The position numbers and the translations under genes were made by a program. Shown in pieces: positions 3,001 through 40,140 of a DNA stretch of 64,000 nucleotides (position 1 is its first letter; every line of letters begins with the position of its first letter). The notes below the pieces were generated by a model that saw only the letters and a list, made by a program, of their open reading frames with translations, did no database searches and was not told the origin of the DNA. The DNA comes from Podarcis liolepis. Taxonomy: Eukaryota. The stretch is from assembly GCA_965112155.1 (NCBI GenBank), contig OZ218104.1, one strand, 5' to 3'.

Positions 3001-6000
3001 AAGGGAAAGTTGCAAAAGTATACAGATTGAATCAGCTGTGTTTCAATTATTTAATTGCCCATTAAATTCATTTAATTGCAAATTAACATGGTGTAGTGGT
3101 CAGATTTGCACTGTGGGAAACATCAATGGGAAATTTGATTTAAATCGCTTAGTTAAATCAGCCCGTTTCTTCATTTACATAATTGACCAAAACACTTTGA
3201 TTTAAATCTGTGCACCTGGGAGTAGGCACAGAGGGAGGGGCTTGAGGAGCTGGGGCCAGGCAGGACTGTGTCCCCCAGTGGGGGAAGGTGTGGGTGAGGT
3301 CAGTGGGTGTGGTCCCTCTCTGCTCTCTTTGACTCACTGCTCTTGCTTCAGAGGGTACCTACACATGGGTGATTCCTCCAGAGGAGCTGCAGCATCATGG
3401 CCTGGGCACCTACTACATCTCTGCAGAGGTGGCTCCCCTCTCTCAGGGCCCCTGGAACCTCTCCATTCACACCATCATCTCTGGATGCTACTACTGGTCC
3501 AGCCAGCGTGAGGCCTGGAGAAGTGATGGATGTCGGGTATGCAGTAGGGTCAACCAGGCCAGAGGGCTGCAGGGCAGGCAAGCAAGCCTTTGCTTCCATG
3601 CTGGGAGAAAAAAAACGTAGGGCAGAATGTCATGGGGAACCAAATGGAGCAGAACTATTGGGACCTCATCCTCCTGTGTTGGTTTCTAATGCATCAGTGC
3701 TTCCCTCCCAGGTGGGCTCCCAAAGCACCCTCCACAGCACCCAGTGCTTGTGCAACCACCTCACCTTCTTTGGGTGCGTCGCCTTGGTCCTGCCACACCT
3801 GATTGACCTTCACAACACTGCAAAGCTCCTGAGCACCGTGGGCCAGAACCCTTCTGGGCTGGCCTTGCTAAGCAGCTTGTTGCTGGGCTATGGAGCTGCC
3901 CTCGTTTGGGCTCGATGGCGACAGAGAACGGATGTTAAGAAGGTGAGGGGAAAGGGCAAGCAAAAGATTTATGATGGTGGTTTGGGGTTATTAGCATTTG
4001 CAGGCCAGAGACACCCACCCCCCATTTGCCCTCATTCAGGCCCTTCTTGTCTGATGTGCTGAAATGAGGAACAATGAAAGTTTTTCATTGGAAATGCAAA
4101 CGGGTCATGAGAGAAGACATTTTACACCGTCTTTTTAGGGTATGAGATATTTATTCAGCAAACAGCTGAGAGCCAGACCCCCTGGAAAAGCCGACTTGCT
4201 GAAGTGGGGCTTGGCCATTTCTAGGGCCACCCACCCCATGTGTGTCTCTCCCCCCTCCAGGTGAAGGTCACAATCCTAGCAGATAATGAGGCCACCGCCT
4301 GCTTTCCTTACCTGGTGCAAGTCTTCACAGGCTACCGCCGAGGGGCTGGGACCTCTGCTAAGGTAGGGGAGGGTCTTACTTCCCTGCAGGCCCACTTTGT
4401 ACTGTTGATGGTACAAGTGCTGCCCATCAAGTTCCATGACCTCGGGCACCTGCCCACAGAATCTGGGCCAAGTCTGGCAGATCTCTCCCTATCAGGGAGT
4501 GGGTGTGTGGGGTGCAGTCTTCTGTGTGACTGGCTGCATGCAAAAGCCTGTCTTTGATGACATCCTTCATGTGCTCCCTGCTTGGGCAAGGAACTGAGGA
4601 AAGGAAGCAATCCATGAACCCCACCCAGCATCCGCCCTCTTTTCCCTTTCCTTGATTGACCCCTTCTCCCTCCTTGGCTTGAGATTATCCTGACCCTCTA
4701 TGGGGCAGAGGGCCGGAGTGAGCCACACCTGCTACAGCACCCCCAGGGGCCCTCCTTTGAGCGAGGTGCGCGGGATGCCTTCCTCCTTGCCACTCAGAAG
4801 TCCCTGGGCAACCTCCACGCCATCCGCCTCTGGCACGACAACACTGGGCCCAACCCCAGCTGGTAAGTCCATGGCCCAGCGAGGGCTGAGGGTGGGGGCC
4901 AAGAGGGTGGGGTTAGAGCGAACCAGACAGCAACTGGGATGCCAGGCAAGGAGGAGGTTGGAAGCACACGACTGGCGTGGGAGAATCCGTTGGCAGCACC
5001 AGACCTTATCAGATGCTAGTAGGCGAAGGGACACTGCAGCTGGCATACCTAGTCCTCCCATGCCATGGGGTTGTGCTGCCAGGACCTGGACACATGCAGA
5101 ATTCTCAGGTCCTCAAAGATACCTCCTTTCAAGCCTATGCTGAAGAAATTCACAATATCCCTGTCCAACTGTAGCAAAACTAGCATCAGGTCAGTTGGAC
5201 ATTCCAGGGGGACGATGGAACTGTGGCATGTCTTGTCCCACCCAAGGTTCATGCTCACCATGTTAAAGGCCAGCTTTGGCTCCAGAGGCCACATTGTTAT
5301 GTCAAATAATGCATATGACCCACCTTTGGTATGAACCCCCAAACATAAAGGATACATCAGGGAGGGAATACGCTTCCATCTCCAGTCTTTTCCCAAAGCT
5401 ACTGGGCAAAGAATGCTTTATGTATAGGTTAACTTGGAGCAAAGCTTCTCTTGTGCTTGAGCCACATGCAGAGAGCCACATGCAGCTCTCTGCTTTGGCA
5501 AGGTAATGAGGGCAGAAGGAAAAGATCCCCACTGCTTCCCTTTAACCTGCAGCTCTTGAGTGATGGGGGAGTGGGGGCAGATCCCTTGGCTGTAGCTAAT
5601 GGGCACCACATGACTGCTTGGCAGTGCCACCCATGTGTGGGCAAACGACTGAAAGGCCTGAGCCTCCTGCAGGTTTGTGAGGCGGCTGGTTGTCTGTGAC
5701 CTGTCTGCCAAGAAGAAGTGGCATTTCCTGTGTGACTCTTGGCTGGCAGCTGACCTGGATGACGGCCATGTGGATAAAGTCTTTGCTGCTGCCTCCGAGA
5801 GGGATCTCCTGTCCTTCAGGTAAATATGAGCCCCACCCACCCACCTCCTGCCAGTTTGTGGCATCTCTGGAATGTGTTTTTGCCCTTGGGGTTTTTCTGC
5901 CCCTGATCTACCCAACAGGTACCTTGCCTTTTGTCAGGGAAGAGTTAGAGGTTTTCAGTTTATCAGAGGGAGAAAGCATTCCCCAAGGGGGGGAGGAGAG

Positions 6001-9000
6001 CAGTGAATCTAATAGAAGGGAGCAAGAGGAACAACAGGGAGGGACCGGTTGTTCAGGACAGGCAAGGGTTAAGTTCTAGCTCAGATTCTGAGGAGAGGAG
6101 ATACAGGCCAGCTCTAGCCAGGAGGTTAGAAAAAAGAGCGGGAAAGCGAAGGGAAAGGCGCCTTCGCCATTTTGAGAGTGGCTGGTCATGGAGAAGCAGA
6201 GCTCAGAAGGTATCTGAAAGAAGTGACTCTGAGGAACAATAGTTAAGAACTGTTTGTAAGAATGTTTTGTTAATACGCAATAAAAAGTTTTATAAAAGAA
6301 CCAGAAGCGTTTGTGTGGTGATCTGAAGAGGACAACGACCAGTCCTGACAGAATACCTTCTGCTCTGCGCCTCTTCACTATAAGTAAAGAAGGAGAAACC
6401 AAAATGGAGGGAGCTGTGGCGCCAGTTGGGCAAGGAGAAACCCCCGCGCTCCAGCTAACATTACAGGACTTATGGCAACAGAACTTACAGTTGAAAAGTC
6501 AAGTCGACGTACTATCGGCAGCACTGGGAGAACATAGAACCATGCTGCAATCGACGTGTGGAGATAGAGTGAGTAAAACATTTACTGTACGTCCACGTAG
6601 CTTCAAGGGAGAAAGCTCTGAATACATGGCTTTCAAGACAGAAATTTCTTACATAATTGAGATAAAGGATAAAGAATTTCAATCTGAGCAAGAGAAGGTT
6701 GCTTATGTGATTAATTTCTTGGAAGGGAGGGCTAAGGACTGTGTTATACCCCTCATATCTCGGAGGGATGTCGCCCTAGGAAATCTACAAATTTTTCTGC
6801 AGTATCTAGACACAATTTTCTTAGACCCTGCGCATGAAACAACCACAGCTAGACAGCTGCTGAGAATGAGACAAGGAAAAGACACTGTGGGAGTTTATTG
6901 GTCCAACTTTAGTTTGCTGGTGCAGAAATTAAAATGGGATCTGAATTCCCCAACAGTTGCAGCCCTTTTTAGGGAAGGACTGAATAATGAGATTTTAGAC
7001 CAATTGGCCCAAATGCCAGAACCTAGTTCCTTGGACTCTCTGGTCCGAACGTGCCTGCAATTGAGCCTACGCGTGGAACGGAGGGCTAGTGAAAAGAAGG
7101 AACAATGGAGACCACGGTGGCGGGAAAATAATATCGAAAGTACAGAGAGCAGAGCGGGCAACGTGACAGGACGAGAGCGGCCAGAGCCCATGGAATTAGG
7201 AGCAGCCAGACCCCTCCCAGTTACTACCTCTTCTATGGTAAGAGGAAATGCAGGGAAAGGAAGAGATGCAAGGCGTTGCTTTGTCTGTGGAAAACCAGGG
7301 CATCTAGCACGACAATGTCACAATCGTAAAGGATGGGAGTCTCTATCTGGAGCAGACATGAGACACGACAATTGCCCAGAGGAACTGCATCAGGGAAACG
7401 AATGTCCCCGGCTGGAAATGGGAGCTTGCAGCCGGGTGGAGAAGCAATAGAAGGCTCTCACGCGGAACCACCTATCCCAGGGCTAACGGTGAAGGTGCAA
7501 CTACAACTACCCAATGGACACAGCGTCCAGGTAGAGGCGTTGTTAGACTCAGGAGCGTCAGCAGATTTCATAGACCAGAAATTGGTACAGGAACACAAAA
7601 TCGCTTTGTTACCTTTGAGTTCCCCACTGCGAGTGAAAACAATCGACGGCAGACCGCTACTTTCAGGAGAAGTGACTTATGAGACTCCACCAATGAGAAT
7701 GGATATGGGTCATCACTCAGAGACCAGGGCATTTCATGTGACCAAACTAGCTGGGCACCCAATGGTGCTGGGCATGAGTTGGCTCAATCGTCATAATCCG
7801 GTAATTGCCTGGCATCAAAGATCTTTGGTTTTTGGTTCGATATATTGTATGACACATTGTTTGGGGCAAAAGGGAAAAATCTCGGTGGAAGTAATGGGAA
7901 CAGAGGTAGAAGGGAAGTTGATGGGGAATGAAAGTGAGATTCCATCACAATATATGGCTTATCAGGATGTTTTTTGTGAAAAAGAAGCAGATAAACTTCC
8001 ACCACATAGGCCCTATGATTGCAAGATAGATCTAGTCCCTGGGGCACAGTTGCCACCAAGCAAGATATATGCCATGTCGGAAGTAGAATCTGCAGCATTG
8101 AGGGAGTTCCTGCAAAAGAATTTGCAGAGAGGTTTTATTAGAGAGTCTACGGCCTCTGGGGGTGCTCCTGTCTTTTTTGTCAAAAAGAAAGGTGAGGAAG
8201 GGGCACCAAGATTAGTATGTGACTTCAGAATCCTTAACAGTCAAATGAAGCCTCGTGTGTGCCCACTGCCACGTATAGATGACCTCTTAGAGAGAGTAAG
8301 GTCAGCCAAAGTCTTTACCAAGCTTGATCTACGAGGAGCATATAATCTGATAAGGGTCAGAGAAGGGGATGAGTGGAAAACCAGTTTTTGTACTAAGTAT
8401 GGTGCATTTGAATTCTTGGTAATGCCTTTTGGCTTGCAAAATGGCTCAGGGGTATTTCAAACCTTCATCAATCACGTATTAGCAGGTATACTGGATCAGT
8501 TCTGTGTCTCTTATTTAGATGACCTCTTAATATATAGTGAAAGTATGGAGGAACACGTAAAACATGTCACACAGGTGTTAGAGAGATTGAGGACCAACAG
8601 GTTATATGTGAAGTTAGAGAAGTGTAAATTCCACACACAAAAGGTGGAGTTCCTGGGATATTGCATTTCCCACAAAGGGGTGCACATGGACCCCAGTAAA
8701 GTTCAGGCAGTGGTGGAATGGGAGGCACCTAAAACTAAGAAAGATCTACAGAGGTTTTTAGGATTTGCTAATTTCTATCGTAAATTCATAGGTAATTACT
8801 CCAAAATCACAGCGCCACTAACTGATTGTCTAAAAGGCAAGGGGCCATTCAGATGGACTGAGGAAGCACAGAAGGCCTTTGATAAATTAAAGGTGGTGTT
8901 TGCTTCAGAAAAATATCTTATGCACCTAGATCCAAGTAAGCGTATAAAGGTAGAAACTGATGCCTCTGACAGGGCTATTGGGGCCATTCTGCTGCAACAG

Positions 9001-12000
9001 GACAAGGAAGGGGACTGGAGACCCTGTGCATTCTACTCTAGAAAATTAAATCAATCAGAACAAAACTACACCATATTTGATAAGGAACTTTTAGCTGTGC
9101 ACGCTGCCTTTAAAGTGTGGAGACATTTTTTGGAAGGGGCATCACATCAGGTGGTGGTACAAACAGATCATAAGAATTTAGAGTATTGGAGAACTGCTAG
9201 ACAGCTAAACCAAAGGCAAATTAGGTGGGCAGAGTTTTTTGCTGGGTTTAATTTTAGGATTGAGTACATACCTGGGCATCAAAACATTCGTGCAGACGCG
9301 CTATCGCGCAAACCTGAGTATATGGAAGGGGAAGCACCTCCCAAGTTGCGAGAAATGCTGAGATCGGATCAGTGGGGGTGTGCAGCCGTAGTAGTGGACG
9401 GCAGGGAATTCCAGCAATTGACAGTAACAGATGAGTTTGCACAAAAGAAAATGGAGGAACTGAGAAAAGGTAAAGGGGAAGAGGAAGGTTTCAAAGAAAA
9501 AGATGGATTGTTGTACAGGAGAGGGGTGCTGTATGTACCTGCAGGTGAATTAAGAGGTAAAGTGTTGAGGCAACATCATGATAACCCGACTGCAGGACAT
9601 TTTGGTAGAGAAAAGACCCTGTATCAGATCACACGGCAGTTCTGGTGGCCAAAGTTGAGGGAGGAAGTAACACAATATGTAAGAGGTTGTGAAGTATGTC
9701 AACGAGCCAAGGCACCCAGAGCAGCTCCCGCAGGGTTGTTGCAACCTATGCCCACGCCGGGAAGGCCTTGGGATGTGGTGTCTATGGATTTTATAACGGA
9801 TCTACCGTCATCGCACAGGCAAACAGTGATCTTTGTAGTGGTTGACATGCTAACCAAGATGGCACATTTCATACCATGTACCAAAATTCCGACCGCACAG
9901 GAAACTGCAAAGATGTTTTTAGATAATATTTTTAGGTTGCATGGTATGCCATCACAAATCATTTCAGATAGAGGGGCCCAATTTACATCACAATTTTGGA
10001 AGAGGTTAATGCAGTTACTAGATGTGGAGCTAAGCCTCACGTCAGCGAGACACCCGCAAACCAATGGGGAAGCTGAAAGAACGAATGCAACACTACAACA
10101 ATATCTGAGGTGTTATGCTGGTTATCAGCAGAGCGGGTGGTTAGAGAAGTTGAGTCTAGCAGAGTTTGCGTATAATAATGCAATGCATGTGTCTACGGGC
10201 AGAGCCCCATTTGTGGCAAACTATGGCTTGCACCCAAGGGCATTCCCAGGTCAAGAGGAGCAGTTAGCAGTACCAGCAGCAGAACAAATGATAGAGGAGT
10301 TGAGGTGCATGCATGAGATATTGAAAGAGGATTTGGAAGAAGCTAAAGAGGCTTACAAAAAAGCTGCAGATAGGCACCGGCGAGTTGGGGAAGAAATCCA
10401 AGTAGGGAGCTGGGTATGGCTGTCTACCAAGGGACTACCAATACGAGGGAAGTGTAAAAAGCTAGAACCAAGGAGATTGGGACCTTTCCAAGTAAAGGCT
10501 CAAATTAACCCAGTCGCTTTCAAGCTTCATTTGCCTGAAAATATGAGAATACACCCTGTATTTCATAGATCTTTATTGTCAGTGTTTGTACCAGCACATA
10601 AGTATCAAATCTCAAGGGAACCACCTCCTTTCCCCACCATGATGGGGGAAGAAGAGACCGAAGTGGAAAAGATATTAGACTCGAGAATAAGTAGGAGGAA
10701 ATTACAGTATTTGGTTGCATGGAAAGGGTTAGATGAGTCTGAGAACTCATGGGAACCAGCAGAAAAAATTAACGTTCCGGAATTGCAGCGAGAATTTCAT
10801 AGAAAATATCCCCACAAGCCAAAACCCCAGAACTGGCATCTTCAAGAAATTTTTGAAGAGACAGATAGCGAGGAAGAGGAGTTCATAGGGTTCGGTCCTC
10901 CAGAAACAGAGGAGAGCGAGGAGGAGGAAGGGGGGCTTAGGGGAGGGGGTGATGTCAGGGAAGAGTTAGAGGTTTTCAGTTTATCAGAGGGAGAAAGCAT
11001 TCCCCAAGGGGGGGAGGAGAGCAGTGAATCTAATAGAAGGGAGCAAGAGGAACAACAGGGAGGGACCGGTTGTTCACAGGACAGGCAAGGGTTAAGTTCT
11101 AGCTCAGATTCTGAGGAGAGGAGATACAGGCCAGCTCTAGCCAGGAGGTTAGAAAAAAGAGCGGGAAAGCGAAGGGAAAGGCGCCTTCGCCATTTTGAGA
11201 GTGGCTGGTCATGGAGAAGCAGAGCTCAGAAGGTATCTGAAAGAAGTGACTCTGAGGAACAATAGTTAAGAACTGTTTGTAAGAATGTTTTGTTAATACG
11301 CAATAAAAAGTTTTATAAAAGAACCAGAAGCGTTTGTGTGGTGATCTGAAGAGGACAACGACCAGTCCTGACACCTTTGACTGAATTATGCTAAGAACAC
11401 CTGTGTGAAAAAGCAATATGCAGACATCAAAAAATAAAAGTCAGAATGGCAGGCTTTGTCCCAGAATCTGCTTGGAATGACGAATCTCAGACCCAGTGAA
11501 GAAAGTTCCTTTGACTATACACAGAGAGGGCCTTTCTCTTCCACCCATCTGGGAGTTGGGTCTTCCTTCCAGGTCAGAGAGTATGATGCAGCTTCCAGCT
11601 CCTCCCCATTCAGAAATTATGTGCAGCAGGAAAGGTCCCACCCTGCTCCTGGCCCTTGACCCTCTCCACCAAATACGTCCCTTATCCCACTTCACCAGGT
11701 ACCAGTTCTGGTCAGGGCTGGTGGACAAATTGACGCAGGAGCACCTGTGGCTGTCGGTGGTGACCTGCTCGCCCTGGAGCCCCTTCACCCGTGTCCAGAG
11801 GCTCTCCTGCTGCCTGGCCCTCCTCTGCTGCACCTTCCTCATCAACATCATGTTCTGGAGAAAAGAGGCAGGGTCCAGAAGCCCTGAGGCTGGTGAGTCG
11901 GCTGCCAGCTGGAGACTAGCATAGCCAGTGCCTTTCCTTGTCCCCTGCCCCAACATGATGCAGGTGGGCGCTGGGCTGGGGGCAGGTGAGTGGGTGGGGT

Positions 12001-37969: not shown

Positions 37970-39955
37970 TCACTTCCCTGCATTTGAACGGCCCTCGATG
38001 GACAACTTAACCTCCTGGGGAATGAATGAAGGGCGGAGGAGTGGTGGCCGGGGCTCCTCCCCAGACCTTTGGAAGCTGGGGCCTGCCCAACCATGCAGAG
38101 AAACAGGATCATGGTGGGTGGACTCCTGGGGGGAGCCCACTGCCACCCCACCCTTCTCCAATGGGTTTTTCTGCAGCTCCTGGAGACTCTCCCCACCCCG
38201 CCCAGGTCTCTCTCGGGTAGCACTCTGGGGGCTTGCCTGGGGCACAAGCCTCCCATTCAGACTCTGTAAACTGATGGAGATGCAAACATCTCCCACCTGC
38301 AGCCTGTGGCAGGAGAGTGAGAAGAGCCGATTTGTCCTCTCTGGACTGCATGAGGACCAGCCCTGTCCATACACAAAGAAAGGGTGCTCAGGGGGCACAT
38401 TGATGCTCACTTTGCTCTGCTGCTCCCCCACCACAAAATGCAGTGTGACGAAACCCTGCCAGGGACTCTCTTGGATGTCCACCACAGTGCTGGAGTCAAT
38501 CTTGAGGCCACCACTCACCTCTGCACTGCGCACAAAGTCCTGGGTCTGCAGGTCCTCCACCCTCTTTAGCTCTCCTGTGGCCAGCTGGATGATGGCTCCT
38601 TTCATGAAGTGGGAGGGTAAGTGGCTCTGGGAATGGGCACATTCCGTGTCAGGTAGTCCCTCATGGGCTGTTCCCTCAGGACTTGCACCTCCCAGGCCAT
38701 CCTGAGCCCCAGGAAGGAGGGACCCTGAGACTGGCCGACCATTGGCCATTGTAATGCCTTTCAGTATTTGCCGATGGCGGAGCTGCTCCTCAGGGGACTT
38801 TGCCGACAGTCTCCGAAAGTGGCTTTTCTCAGCAGTAGCAGCCACCACAAGTTCCACTGGGTTCCTCATTGACTCTGCCTTCTGCTCAGGGGGATTACGA
38901 TGGGAAAGGTTTAGAGGGCTCAAGCCATCCTTCTGCTGAGCAGAACAAACAGGGTAGTCCTGGGAAGCAAGCACTCCAACCACCCTCTGCACCTCCAGGT
39001 CTGTATCTGGGGTGCTCCGCTGAGATGGCACAGAGATCTCTGTTCTCAAAATCTGACTGCTTGTCAAGAAGGTACCTTCAGTGCTGCACTCTACTGTTGT
39101 CCTTGGCCACTGCCCTTCAGCCTCACTTTCCTTCGCCCCCACGGCAGACCTTTGCACCCCATTTGCTGTGACTTTAGGATCTAGCTGATTCTCCTGCAGA
39201 GACTGTTCAGTGTTTGGGCCAGCAACAGAAGCTTCAAATGATGAATAGCCTGCTGGCAGACGGGACATCTGATAATAGACTGGAATTCGGCCCTGTGTAA
39301 CATCCAGTGGCTGACCTCCAACATGGGGCTGCAGAGAGCCTGAAGACAAAACTGAGGCACTGGTCTTGCCAAAGCTGTGGGCTGCCTGTGGAGAAGGAGC
39401 AGAGTCTTCAGCCAGGAGAGGTGCATAGGGCACAAAGTGTGGGATATGAGAGGCAGCAAGGCTGGCTGAAGAGGACAGAAGGTGGCTGGGCAGGAAGCCA
39501 GGAGGCACAGCGGCGGCATAGGGTACAGAGTAGTGTGATCCCACAAACTGCAAGGGAGCAGGAGGAAGTTGAGTGTAATGGATAGGCGAGTAGGGGATAC
39601 CAGGGTGCGGGATCAGCTGTGAGGTCATACTGAAGGCTGGAGGCAGCGGGCTAACATTCACCACGGGTGAGAAGGTGGCTGGGGGCATCGCCACTTTGTA
39701 CAATAAGCCGTACTGGTCCACGGTAAGACTGGTCACTGTGTCGGAGCTGCCACCAGCCTCCGAGTAACGTGAAGGTGCCTGGCTCTGCCTGCCTGTTGCT
39801 GAGCCCCGGGACCATTCCACAGAGGTCTCGCCGCCGCCGCCGCCCACCAGACCCGACTCAGCCGCCCGCCCCGGCTCTTCGTTGTTGGCAGCCACCGGCA
39901 GGTCGCGCTTCTTGGGGGGGAGGAATTCCTGGCCCCGCTCCTGAGCCGCTCTCAT
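37970..39955 (-). CDS. ATXN1L: Ataxin-1-like, single coding exon, 661 aa
   Basis: ATG at 39955 gives MRAAQERGQEFLPPKKRDL; RSTPDTDLEVQ motif; AXH domain (LPSHFMKGAIIQLATGELKRVEDL...EHPFFVYGQGWSSC); C-terminal IPQEVKLSIEGRSNAGK. Confidence 0.97.
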   Translation of the reverse strand: MRAAQERGQEFLPPKKRDLPVAANNEEPGRAAESGLVGGGGGETSVEWSRGSATGRQSQAPSRYSEAGGSSDTVTSLTVDQYGLLYKVAMPPATFSPVVNVSPLPPAFSMTSQLIPHPGIPYSPIHYTQLPPAPLQFVGSHYSVPYAAAVPPGFLPSHLLSSSASLAASHIPHFVPYAPLLAEDSAPSPQAAHSFGKTSASVLSSGSLQPHVGGQPLDVTQGRIPVYYQMSRLPAGYSSFEASVAGPNTEQSLQENQLDPKVTANGVQRSAVGAKESEAEGQWPRTTVECSTEGTFLTSSQILRTEISVPSQRSTPDTDLEVQRVVGVLASQDYPVCSAQQKDGLSPLNLSHRNPPEQKAESMRNPVELVVAATAEKSHFRRLSAKSPEEQLRHRQILKGITMANGRPVSGSLLPGAQDGLGGASPEGTAHEGLPDTECAHSQSHLPSHFMKGAIIQLATGELKRVEDLQTQDFVRSAEVSGGLKIDSSTVVDIQESPWQGFVTLHFVVGEQQSKVSINVPPEHPFFVYGQGWSSCSPERTNRLFSLSCHRLQVGDVCISISLQSLNGRLVPQASPQSATRERPGRGGESLQELQKNPLEKGGVAVGSPQESTHHDPVSLHGWAGPSFQRSGEEPRPPLLRPSFIPQEVKLSIEGRSNAGK

Positions 39956-40140
39956 GGCGCTCGCTTCGGGAAGCTGCAAGGTGGGCTGCTGCTGTCGCCT
40001 CCTCCTCCTCAAGGGGGTCTCCGGGCGGGATCACCTGCAAAGACACAGAGAAGAGCACAGGGGTCAGCCGGGTGGGGGGGGCAGGCGGGCGGCTTCCGCC
40101 CGGCGGGGGGAAGGGAGCCCCGGACACTCCTGTCGCTCAC

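Follow-up and report, generated by a model that had tools for sequence, protein, structure and literature searches.

The 64,000-nt window of Podarcis liolepis DNA contains an intact, young Ty3/gypsy chromovirus with both LTRs and a 5-bp target duplication (Table 1). The pol reading frame begins within the final part of gag, in the -1 frame, and the Pfam domains of Pol follow the order PR, RT, RNase H, IN zinc domain, IN core, SH3 and chromodomain. The PR-RT-RNase H-IN order, the chromodomain at the integrase C-terminus and the flanking LTRs identify the element as a chromovirus. It is young and active, and several observations besides the target duplication bear this out. In the alignment of the 5' and 3' LTRs, the sole difference is a 2-bp CA indel. 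Three related species lack the insertion at the orthologous site, and their contigs run from position 5926 directly into 11374, with 5 bases of overlap. The family is also abundant: its word depth is tens of times higher than in the flanks. The six-frame ORF list of the insertion flanks comprised more than 400 segments.

Table 1. Features of the chromovirus and of its integrase tail (positions in the window)
Feature	Position	Strand	Basis or remark
Target-site duplication CCTTT, left copy	5927..5931	+	LTR/flank alignment; empty-site contigs with 5-base overlap
5' LTR, TG..CA ends, inverted termini TGTCAGG/CCTGACA	5932..6350	+	alignment to 3' LTR
gag ORF, capsid-like domain and CCHC zinc knuckle	6401..7450	+	ORF and domain search
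pol ORF, 1310 aa, intact: PR, RT, RNase H, integrase, SH3, chromodomain, acidic tail	7333..11265	+	translation, Pfam
Chromodomain, Pol aa 1110-1158	10660..10806	+	Pfam PF00385, E 1e-13
Putative helix WHLQEIFE, aa 1168-1175, hydrophobic anchor of the module	10834..10857	+	AF2, alignment of relatives
Acidic Ser/Thr linker EETDSEEEE, aa 1175-1183, 9 residues	10855..10881	+	translation
FIGF, aa 1184-1187, FxGF motif	10882..10893	+	Glu (E1182) at -2, giving E-x-F-x-G-F
Acidic tract GPPETEESEEEE, directly 3' of the motif	10894..10929	+	translation
Polypurine tract core AGGGGAGGGGG	10939..10949	+	3 nt upstream of 3' LTR; inside pol reading frame
3' LTR	10953..11373	+	initial 313 nt are the final 104 pol codons
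Target-site duplication CCTTT, right copy	11374..11378	+	LTR/flank alignment; empty-site contigs

After the chromodomain, Pol has a tail of 147 residues, 33 of which are Glu. Nucleotides 10840-10893 encode exactly LQEIFEETDSEEEEFIGF, residues 1170-1187 of the translation of 7333-11265. This peptide had been placed just after the chromodomain, and the translation and Pfam assignment agree, since it starts 12 residues past the chromodomain end. The Ile-Phe pair of the module lies at offset 9-10 after the KP that ends the chromodomain. The CK2-type S/T-x-x-E sites that had been pointed out in the acidic tract are present at T1177 (TDSE) and S1179 (SEEE). The tail is purine-rich coding sequence adjoining the polypurine tract.

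Comparison of the tail peptide with FxGF-type motifs

We drew the motif definition from a review of TND-interacting motifs (TIMs) and from the DPF3a paper. According to the review, a TIM is an obligate helix with F, V, L or I anchors followed by an acidic linker of 8-16 residues. The linker is rich in D, E, G, S and T and is phosphorylated by CK2, which raises affinity, and all known LEDGF/HRP2 ligands possess and require FxGF. The DPF3a paper reports (S/E)xFxGF as the consensus, along with a DPF3a peptide whose binding to HRP2 is validated, LFGSTSESDTSTFHGFDEDD. The initial annotation had recognized such a motif in the tail, and the window matches the published IBM/TIM description: WHLQEIF, a predicted helix, is followed by the 9-residue linker EETDSEEEE, rich in the listed residues, and then by FIGF (Pol aa 1184-1187) with Glu at -2, so that E1182-E-F-I-G-F fits (S/E)xFxGF.

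The AF2 model of the unbound chain has a helix at fragment residues 169-176, which correspond to WHLQEIFE. The mean pLDDT is 81 for fragment residues 161-170 and 56 for 171-180. Beyond the helix, AF2 shows no secondary structure and pLDDT does not rise above about 50 as far as the C-terminus, as predicted for a disordered tail. In each of three modules (that of the window and both modules of the relative P0210), a helix on the hydrophobic anchor is followed by low-confidence coil. The helix confidence is moderate to low, with pLDDT dropping from about 80 to 50, and falls below 50 in the second module of the PodA family.

The host motifs of the FxGF subclass (KMT2A/MLL1, JPO2/CDCA7L, POGZ, IWS1, ASK, MED1 and DPF3a, and Drosophila JIL-1-JASPer) have the helix-linker-(S/E)xFxGF build that the window motif matches with a predicted helix and, like the window motif, are located in disordered regions with CK2-type sites. 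JPO2 has tandem motifs, as does the PodA family. However, the host motifs sit on transcription regulators, whereas the window motif is on the integrase of a mobile element and is a putative ligand by its sequence.

Conservation in relatives and the chromodomain cage

Relatives were collected without reference to the motif, using search words from Pol aa 740-1165 only. Among the matches with usable tails, the module lies at a constant distance from the chromodomain end in three diverged families, the window's own and those of Podarcis proteins. In all three, PhiF is at positions 9-10 after the chromodomain and [F/L/M]xGF at 19-20, with a linker of 8-9 residues between helix and FxGF. Acidic or Ser-rich residues follow FxGF in the relatives too. 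Including cluster members, the motif-bearing set comprises 33 proteins in 21 distinct versions. In the PodB family, F, G and F are fixed while the x of FxGF varies (Q/H/R), and the module, WLFTPTLSASTFHGFDSDEE, is very similar to the DPF3a peptide. In the first PodA module, the first Phe of FxGF is replaced by Leu or Met, and the second, tandem module ends in FRGF in 12/12 copies. The sister lineage in Anolis has EEEN[L/F]GF only.

In a tree built from the integrase core only, the motif-bearing families form one clade (99% SH-aLRT), and the paths between families amount to 0.9-1.3 changes per site. Conservation within the family had been set out initially as the check on which the motif should stand or fall, and the motif is kept in three diverged families of this one clade. 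Apart from a few assembly contigs, the relatives with the motif belong to a single lizard genus, so this is conservation among paralogous families within one host lineage. The remaining tail upstream of the polypurine tract gave no alignment between the motif families. At closer range, the 311-aa C-terminal fragment, used as query, returned seven matches, one of them useful: a Podarcis lilfordi copy, 94% identical, in which all 21 motif residues are unchanged and about 15 of the next 120 differ. With motif match, family conservation and a young element, the predictions made initially at the level of sequence all held.

Other searches added less. Matching the 95-aa chromodomain-plus-motif segment against 1.84 billion representatives with phmmer returned mostly multi-chromodomain proteins, with three relevant ones (P0121, P0210 and P0236). 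Scoring a homolog search on aa 1095-1200 yielded four matches, none informative; phmmer with a 39-aa peptide against PDB chains found only a chance match to MCM6 (E 2.5), and an ESM Atlas feature search with aa 1162-1200 gave uninformative scores of at most 0.81.

The chromodomain of the window element has T/W/L at its cage positions. By the definition in the literature, a Group I chromodomain reads H3K9me with a Y/W/Y aromatic cage; compared with the Y/W/Y of its relatives, the window element has lost the first and third aromatics and so lacks the three that mark Group I. Across the motif clade, the cage positions are T/W/L, N|Y/W/E or N/R/T. In every scorable relative outside the squamate clade, the first cage position is aromatic and the second is Trp, and nearly all of these relatives have the full Y/W/Y. 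The 94 tree relatives outside that clade end 0-30 residues past the chromodomain, barring a few longer, non-acidic tails. Group I chromoviruses (MAGGY, Sushi-ichi, and fish- and amphibian-like relatives) resemble the window element in Pol architecture, C-terminal chromodomain and integrase clade. They differ in having a Y/W/Y cage and a Pol that stops just past the chromodomain, whereas the window element has T/W/L and an acidic, motif-bearing tail of 147 residues. The association of cage loss with motif gain is a single evolutionary event and hence carries no statistical weight.

A possible integrase tether

We hypothesized that the conserved module is a selected linear motif of the FxGF-type TIM class in a disordered integrase tail, which docks LEDGF/HRP2 to tether the intasome. 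In this reading, its parts would be a short amphipathic helix anchored by Phe, Ile and Leu, an acidic linker of 8-9 residues open to phosphorylation, and FxGF. On the sequence match and its conservation, we consider this reading plausible, at somewhat less than even probability. The integrase tail would dock onto the IBD/TND of the H3K36me readers LEDGF/p75 (PSIP1) and/or HRP2 (HDGFL2), copying the binding mode of the host ligands KMT2A, JPO2, IWS1, POGZ and DPF3a. Phosphorylation of T1177/S1179 by a CK2-type kinase would probably strengthen the contact. The docked tail may then tether the intasome to transcribed chromatin, and this tether would replace the reading of H3K9me by a chromodomain stripped of its aromatic cage.

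The module might instead be a functionless chance match in a low-complexity acidic tail. When the 147-aa tail was shuffled 200,000 times with its composition preserved, F.GF alone appeared in 1.4% of the shuffled tails, and the purine-rich coding sequence of the tail adjoins the polypurine tract, which would both be in keeping with chance. However, [SED].F.GF was found in 0.58% of the shuffles, and the full pattern, in which a hydrophobic residue paired with Phe precedes [SED]xFxGF by 8-16 residues, in only 0.018%. The module exceeds chance because the same module is at the same offset in diverged relatives, in families about one change per site apart in the integrase core, and it has also been duplicated; we disfavour the chance reading as very unlikely. 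Deltaretroviral IN binds PP2A-B56 via an LxxIxE motif, and LQEIFE (aa 1170-1175), followed by acidic residues, fits L-x-x-I-x-E, in which case FxGF would be incidental. We rejected B56 docking, which appears highly improbable, as LxxIxE is not kept in the relatives (FRREYF in PodA module 1, FDDWLF in PodB and WRGVFK in some PodA module 2 copies), while FxGF or PhixGF is kept in all of them. It is hardly credible that what is conserved is a cis-acting nucleic-acid element close to the polypurine tract rather than the peptide. The polypurine tract and LTR start just downstream are indeed conserved, and for this reason the GG.DVRE peptide is common to the families. The motif itself, however, is 46-110 nt upstream of the polypurine tract, and in PodB more than 100 codons upstream, and the conserved amino-acid pattern (F, G, F, PhiF, acidic or Ser/Thr) uses different residues and codons in each family.

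If the peptide is under selection, its partner may still be other than a TND. Acidic-aromatic peptides bind many partners, and histone-binding elements are commonly acidic stretches with aromatic anchors. The very acidic tail (33 Glu/147 residues) might contact histone surfaces (H2A-H2B or H3-H4), an import factor, or a different part of the intasome or chromodomain, and conservation alone indicates selection, not the identity of the partner. We regard such a partner as rather unlikely, since the invariant F-x-G-F with variable x and the fixed 8-9-residue spacing from the helix-borne PhiF are specific to TIM/IBM motifs, and the PodB module is a near-copy of the validated DPF3a IBM. The module could also bind a TND in a role other than targeting, such as nuclear or chromatin retention of the integrase or pre-integration complex, stability, or interference with host elongation complexes. 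The review notes that TNDs are present in several elongation factors and that TIMs build higher-order complexes, and a link from motif to insertion site would be hypothetical. Still, this role is improbable given the position of the motif on the integrase C-terminus, the site of chromodomains and of other known targeting determinants in LTR elements and retroviruses.

Taking the module as a tether to LEDGF/HRP2, we considered a switch of targeting in the squamate chromovirus clade. In such a switch, the cage would have decayed, a mimic of LEDGF/HRP2 ligands would have been gained (and duplicated in one family), and insertion would have been redirected from heterochromatin to H3K36me gene bodies. 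This scenario, built from the cage residues and the motif, is possible but somewhat doubtful; a single insertion is uninformative on targeting. The likeness of PodB to the DPF3a peptide would allow the motif to have been captured from the host DPF3 gene, which we considered alongside convergence; a stretch of about 20 residues is too short to distinguish the two.

Chromoviruses are thought to target via the chromodomain, and tethering of integrases by host factors is known from lentiviruses, gammaretroviruses and yeast Ty elements. Our literature search found no paper describing such a motif on the integrase of an LTR retrotransposon. If the tether is real, the element would be, as far as this search shows, the first LTR retrotransposon with TND/IBD mimicry, and mobile elements would be seen to mimic TIMs more widely than known so far. 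Cage-intact sister families devoid of the motif and cage-lost families with one or two motifs would then provide a natural comparison within one genome, which could reveal how targeting modules are exchanged in evolution. Such a tether might also account for where young insertions accumulate in lacertid genomes.

The proposed tether has parallels in other integrases. The C-terminal tail of MLV integrase binds the BET ET domain and the targeting domain of Ty5 integrase binds Sir4, and both set the insertion profile. Judging by the titles of the papers on Ty1 integrase-AC40 and on Ty3-TFIIIB, a short integrase peptide and a host factor set the insertion profile there as well. As proposed here, a peptide in or near the integrase C-terminus of MLV, Ty5, Ty1 and Ty3 binds a host chromatin or transcription factor, but the host partner and the chromatin destination differ from those of our proposal. 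To our knowledge, an FxGF-type motif has not been described in any of these four systems. Lentiviral integrase binds the IBD with a folded surface, the interface of the catalytic-core dimer, and not with a linear motif. The disordered tail of the window element would instead copy the linear motif of the host, and its case would thus be one of host-ligand mimicry and of convergence on the same tether by a different binding mode. The LEDGF tether would then have been reached at least twice, through different binding modes. The use of H3K36me readers as the chromatin tether would be shared with lentiviral integrase, which works with LEDGF/p75 or HRP2 (review, section on viral mimicry).

The Pol tail of an intact chromovirus

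An intact Ty3/gypsy chromovirus lies in the window; its LTRs differ solely by a 2-bp CA indel at about 11075-11078. The pol frame continues through the polypurine tract (PPT) and the first 313 nt (104 codons) of the 3' LTR, and the motif lies upstream of both. Translation bears out exactly the peptide that the initial annotation had read there.

Features of the chromovirus and of the window (nt)
Feature	Position	Remarks
5' LTR	5932-6350	TG..CA ends
3' LTR	10953-11373	TG..CA ends
Target-site duplication		CCTTT, 5 bp, either side of LTR pair
gag ORF	6401-7450	between LTRs
pol ORF	7333-11265	1310 codons, -1 frame
Pol domains		Pfam: protease, RT, RNase H, integrase zinc, integrase core, Tf2-type SH3, chromodomain
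Chromodomain	10660-10806	Pol aa 1110-1158 (Pfam)
Motif peptide	10840-10893	LQEIFEETDSEEEEFIGF, Pol aa 1170-1187
LQEIFE	10840-10857	LxxIxE-like
PPT	10939-10949	inside pol reading frame
Stop-free frame, - strand	37973-40030	686 codons; probably another mobile element

According to the review of TFIIS N-terminal domains (TNDs), a TND-interacting motif (TIM) needs a short helix with Phe, Val, Leu or Ile anchors and a CK2-phosphorylated acidic linker that spans 8-16 residues and is rich in Asp/Glu/Gly/Ser/Thr; FxGF is optional for TIMs generally, and it is present and essential in every known LEDGF or HRP2 TND ligand. The paper on HRP2 and its host ligand DPF3a gives the consensus (S/E)xFxGF and a validated peptide, LFGSTSESDTSTFHGFDEDD, whose binding is abolished by Phe-to-Ala mutation and strengthened by phospho-Ser at -2. 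The JASPer paper found the contact of FxGF with the LEDGF domain also in Drosophila. In the window, WHLQEIF is followed by EETDSEEEE (9 residues) and FIGF with Glu at -2, and T1177 and S1179 of the linker are in S/T-x-x-E context. AF2 modeling of the SH3-chromodomain-tail fragment predicted a helix at aa 1168-1175 (WHLQEIFE) and coil beyond, at pLDDT of about 50 or lower. Helix anchor, acidic linker and E-x-F-x-G-F all appear to fit the published definition, in agreement with the proposed build of a TIM or IBD-binding motif (IBM) with CK2-type sites. When the 147-residue tail was shuffled 200,000 times with its composition preserved, F.GF arose in 1.4% of the shuffles, [SED].F.GF in 0.58%, and the latter preceded at 8-16 residues by a hydrophobic-Phe pair in 0.018%.

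The module in related elements

Search words and scoring for homologs were limited to Pol aa 740-1165, which excludes the motif, and therefore it could not bias the matches. The best 120 homologs were of two kinds, a short-tailed majority and squamate elements with long acidic tails. Nearly all of these 120 end 0-30 residues past the chromodomain end (FHxxYPxKP) with short, basic tails, and the short-tailed ones look like elements of fish or amphibian type. The few longer tails among non-squamate homologs (57-87 residues, one a fusion gene model) were not acidic and lacked the module.

The initial annotation had set conservation in the family beforehand as a test that could refute it, and the module was found at a fixed offset after the chromodomain in three families (that of the window element and two represented by Podarcis proteins), with the hydrophobic-Phe pair at 9-10 and xGF at 19-20. 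It is carried by 33 proteins (21 distinct versions), whose hosts are essentially one genus. One evidently decayed copy has FEEF. In PodB, x of FxGF varies and F, G and F are invariant. All 12 copies of PodA and PodA' bear a second module, W..[V/M]F with nine acidic or Ser residues and FRGF, and thus at least one canonical FxGF is kept in every family. AF2 predicted a helix, with low confidence, at the anchor of both modules of P0210, the PodA' protein. The PodA and PodB families, which match the motif types of tandem modules and SASTFRGFDSDED, were verified in public proteins. A Podarcis lilfordi copy differs from the window at 0 of 21 motif residues and about 15 of the next 120, which is suggestive and alone not significant. 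PodB tails (P0010 and others) also have a second conserved Trp-rich element, SYWWDD.PEE.WRRKW, about 35-60 residues past FxGF.

Module and chromodomain cage residues by family (P-numbers, single homolog proteins)
Family	Proteins	Helix	Linker	FxGF	Cage
Window		WHLQEIF	EETDSEEEE	FIGF	T/W/L
PodA	P0002, P0003, P0068 + cluster	RFRREYF	GTTDEE.E	[L/M]EGF	N or Y/W/E
PodA'	P0210	RFWEEQF	ATTDEEEED	FVGF	
PodB	P0007, P0009-11, P0018, P0044 + cluster	FFDDWLF	TPTLSAST	F[Q/H/R]GF, then DSDEE	N/R/T; no Pfam chromodomain match
Anolis			EEEN[L/F]GF only		F/W/F
Scored non-squamate relatives					first aromatic and second Trp in all; third Y/F except few H/C

A maximum-likelihood tree was built from the integrase core alone, with chromodomain and tail excluded. 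It united the squamate elements in a single clade (99% SH-aLRT), inside which the window element, PodA and PodB grouped together (99%), with Anolis and two motif-less lineages as sister; paths between motif families measured 0.9-1.3 changes per site. Outside the module, the non-LTR tail was unalignable among the motif families. The LTR-coded tail could be aligned with those of PodA and PodB around GG.DVRE, which is common to them because the PPT and LTR start are conserved.

Candidate partner and purpose

The module is very probably a linear motif under selection. A cis-acting constraint on the nucleic acid could also conserve it, but this is unlikely, as different families build the same pattern from different residues and the PodB module is separated from the PPT by more than 100 codons. 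The best candidate partner would be a LEDGF/HRP2-type TND, given that the module has the three-part geometry, keeps F-G-F invariant, has been duplicated and resembles DPF3a, whose validated peptide is strikingly similar to the PodB module. The main rival, a different reader of acidic-aromatic peptides as the partner, is held to be less likely. Deltaretroviral integrases use LxxIxE for PP2A-B56 docking; LQEIFE was considered as such a site and rejected, since related families have not kept the pattern.

The integrase C-terminus, where the module is located, is also where targeting determinants are found in other LTR elements and retroviruses, so tethering of the intasome would be the module's most likely purpose. 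The whole chain, from selected motif through a LEDGF/HRP2-type TND to intasome tethering, is tentatively put at slightly under an even chance. Known cases comprise host IBM/TIM proteins, the hijacking of LEDGF by lentiviruses, and the tethering of Ty1 and Ty3; our literature search found no FxGF or TIM motif described in any retrotransposon.

Chromodomain cage, age and copies

Group I chromodomains read H3K9me with a Y/W/Y cage, and group II chromodomains, known from plants only as of 2013 (2013 paper), lack the first and third aromatics. Nearly all scored non-squamate relatives have the full [Y/F/W]-W-[Y/F] cage. The window chromodomain has lost the first and third aromatics, which is the group II pattern, and the PodA and PodB cages are eroded further. 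Cage loss and motif gain coincide among the lineages compared; both fall on one and the same branch, which makes this an observation rather than a statistical association.

The element is young and its family active. In three related species (organisms B, C and D) the orthologous site is empty, as shown by contigs at single-copy depth that run from 5926 straight into 11374, the two sides overlapping by 5 bases. In the same runs, word depth, which is not copy number, was 340-470 in the internal region, 1000-2800 in the LTRs and 9-20 in the flanks. This depth indicates tens of near-identical family copies, and its excess in the LTRs suggests many solo LTRs. Between the internal contigs and the window there are 0-6 differing bases per kb, and the unchanged motif in these contigs is uninformative at such identity. 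RNA of organism E (a stranded-looking run) gave a few reads over 7670-11400 and none on gag, with the first mate solely on the + strand; their strand and source are ambiguous, with an antisense transcript, a read-through transcript or a truncated copy as possible origins. Identity to the window is 94% both for a Podarcis lilfordi protein (P0314) and for a Podarcis muralis fragment (P0121). P0121 is a 147-aa gene model in which an integrase fragment, chromodomain and intact motif are fused to unrelated sequence, which may reflect a chimeric model spanning a rearranged copy.
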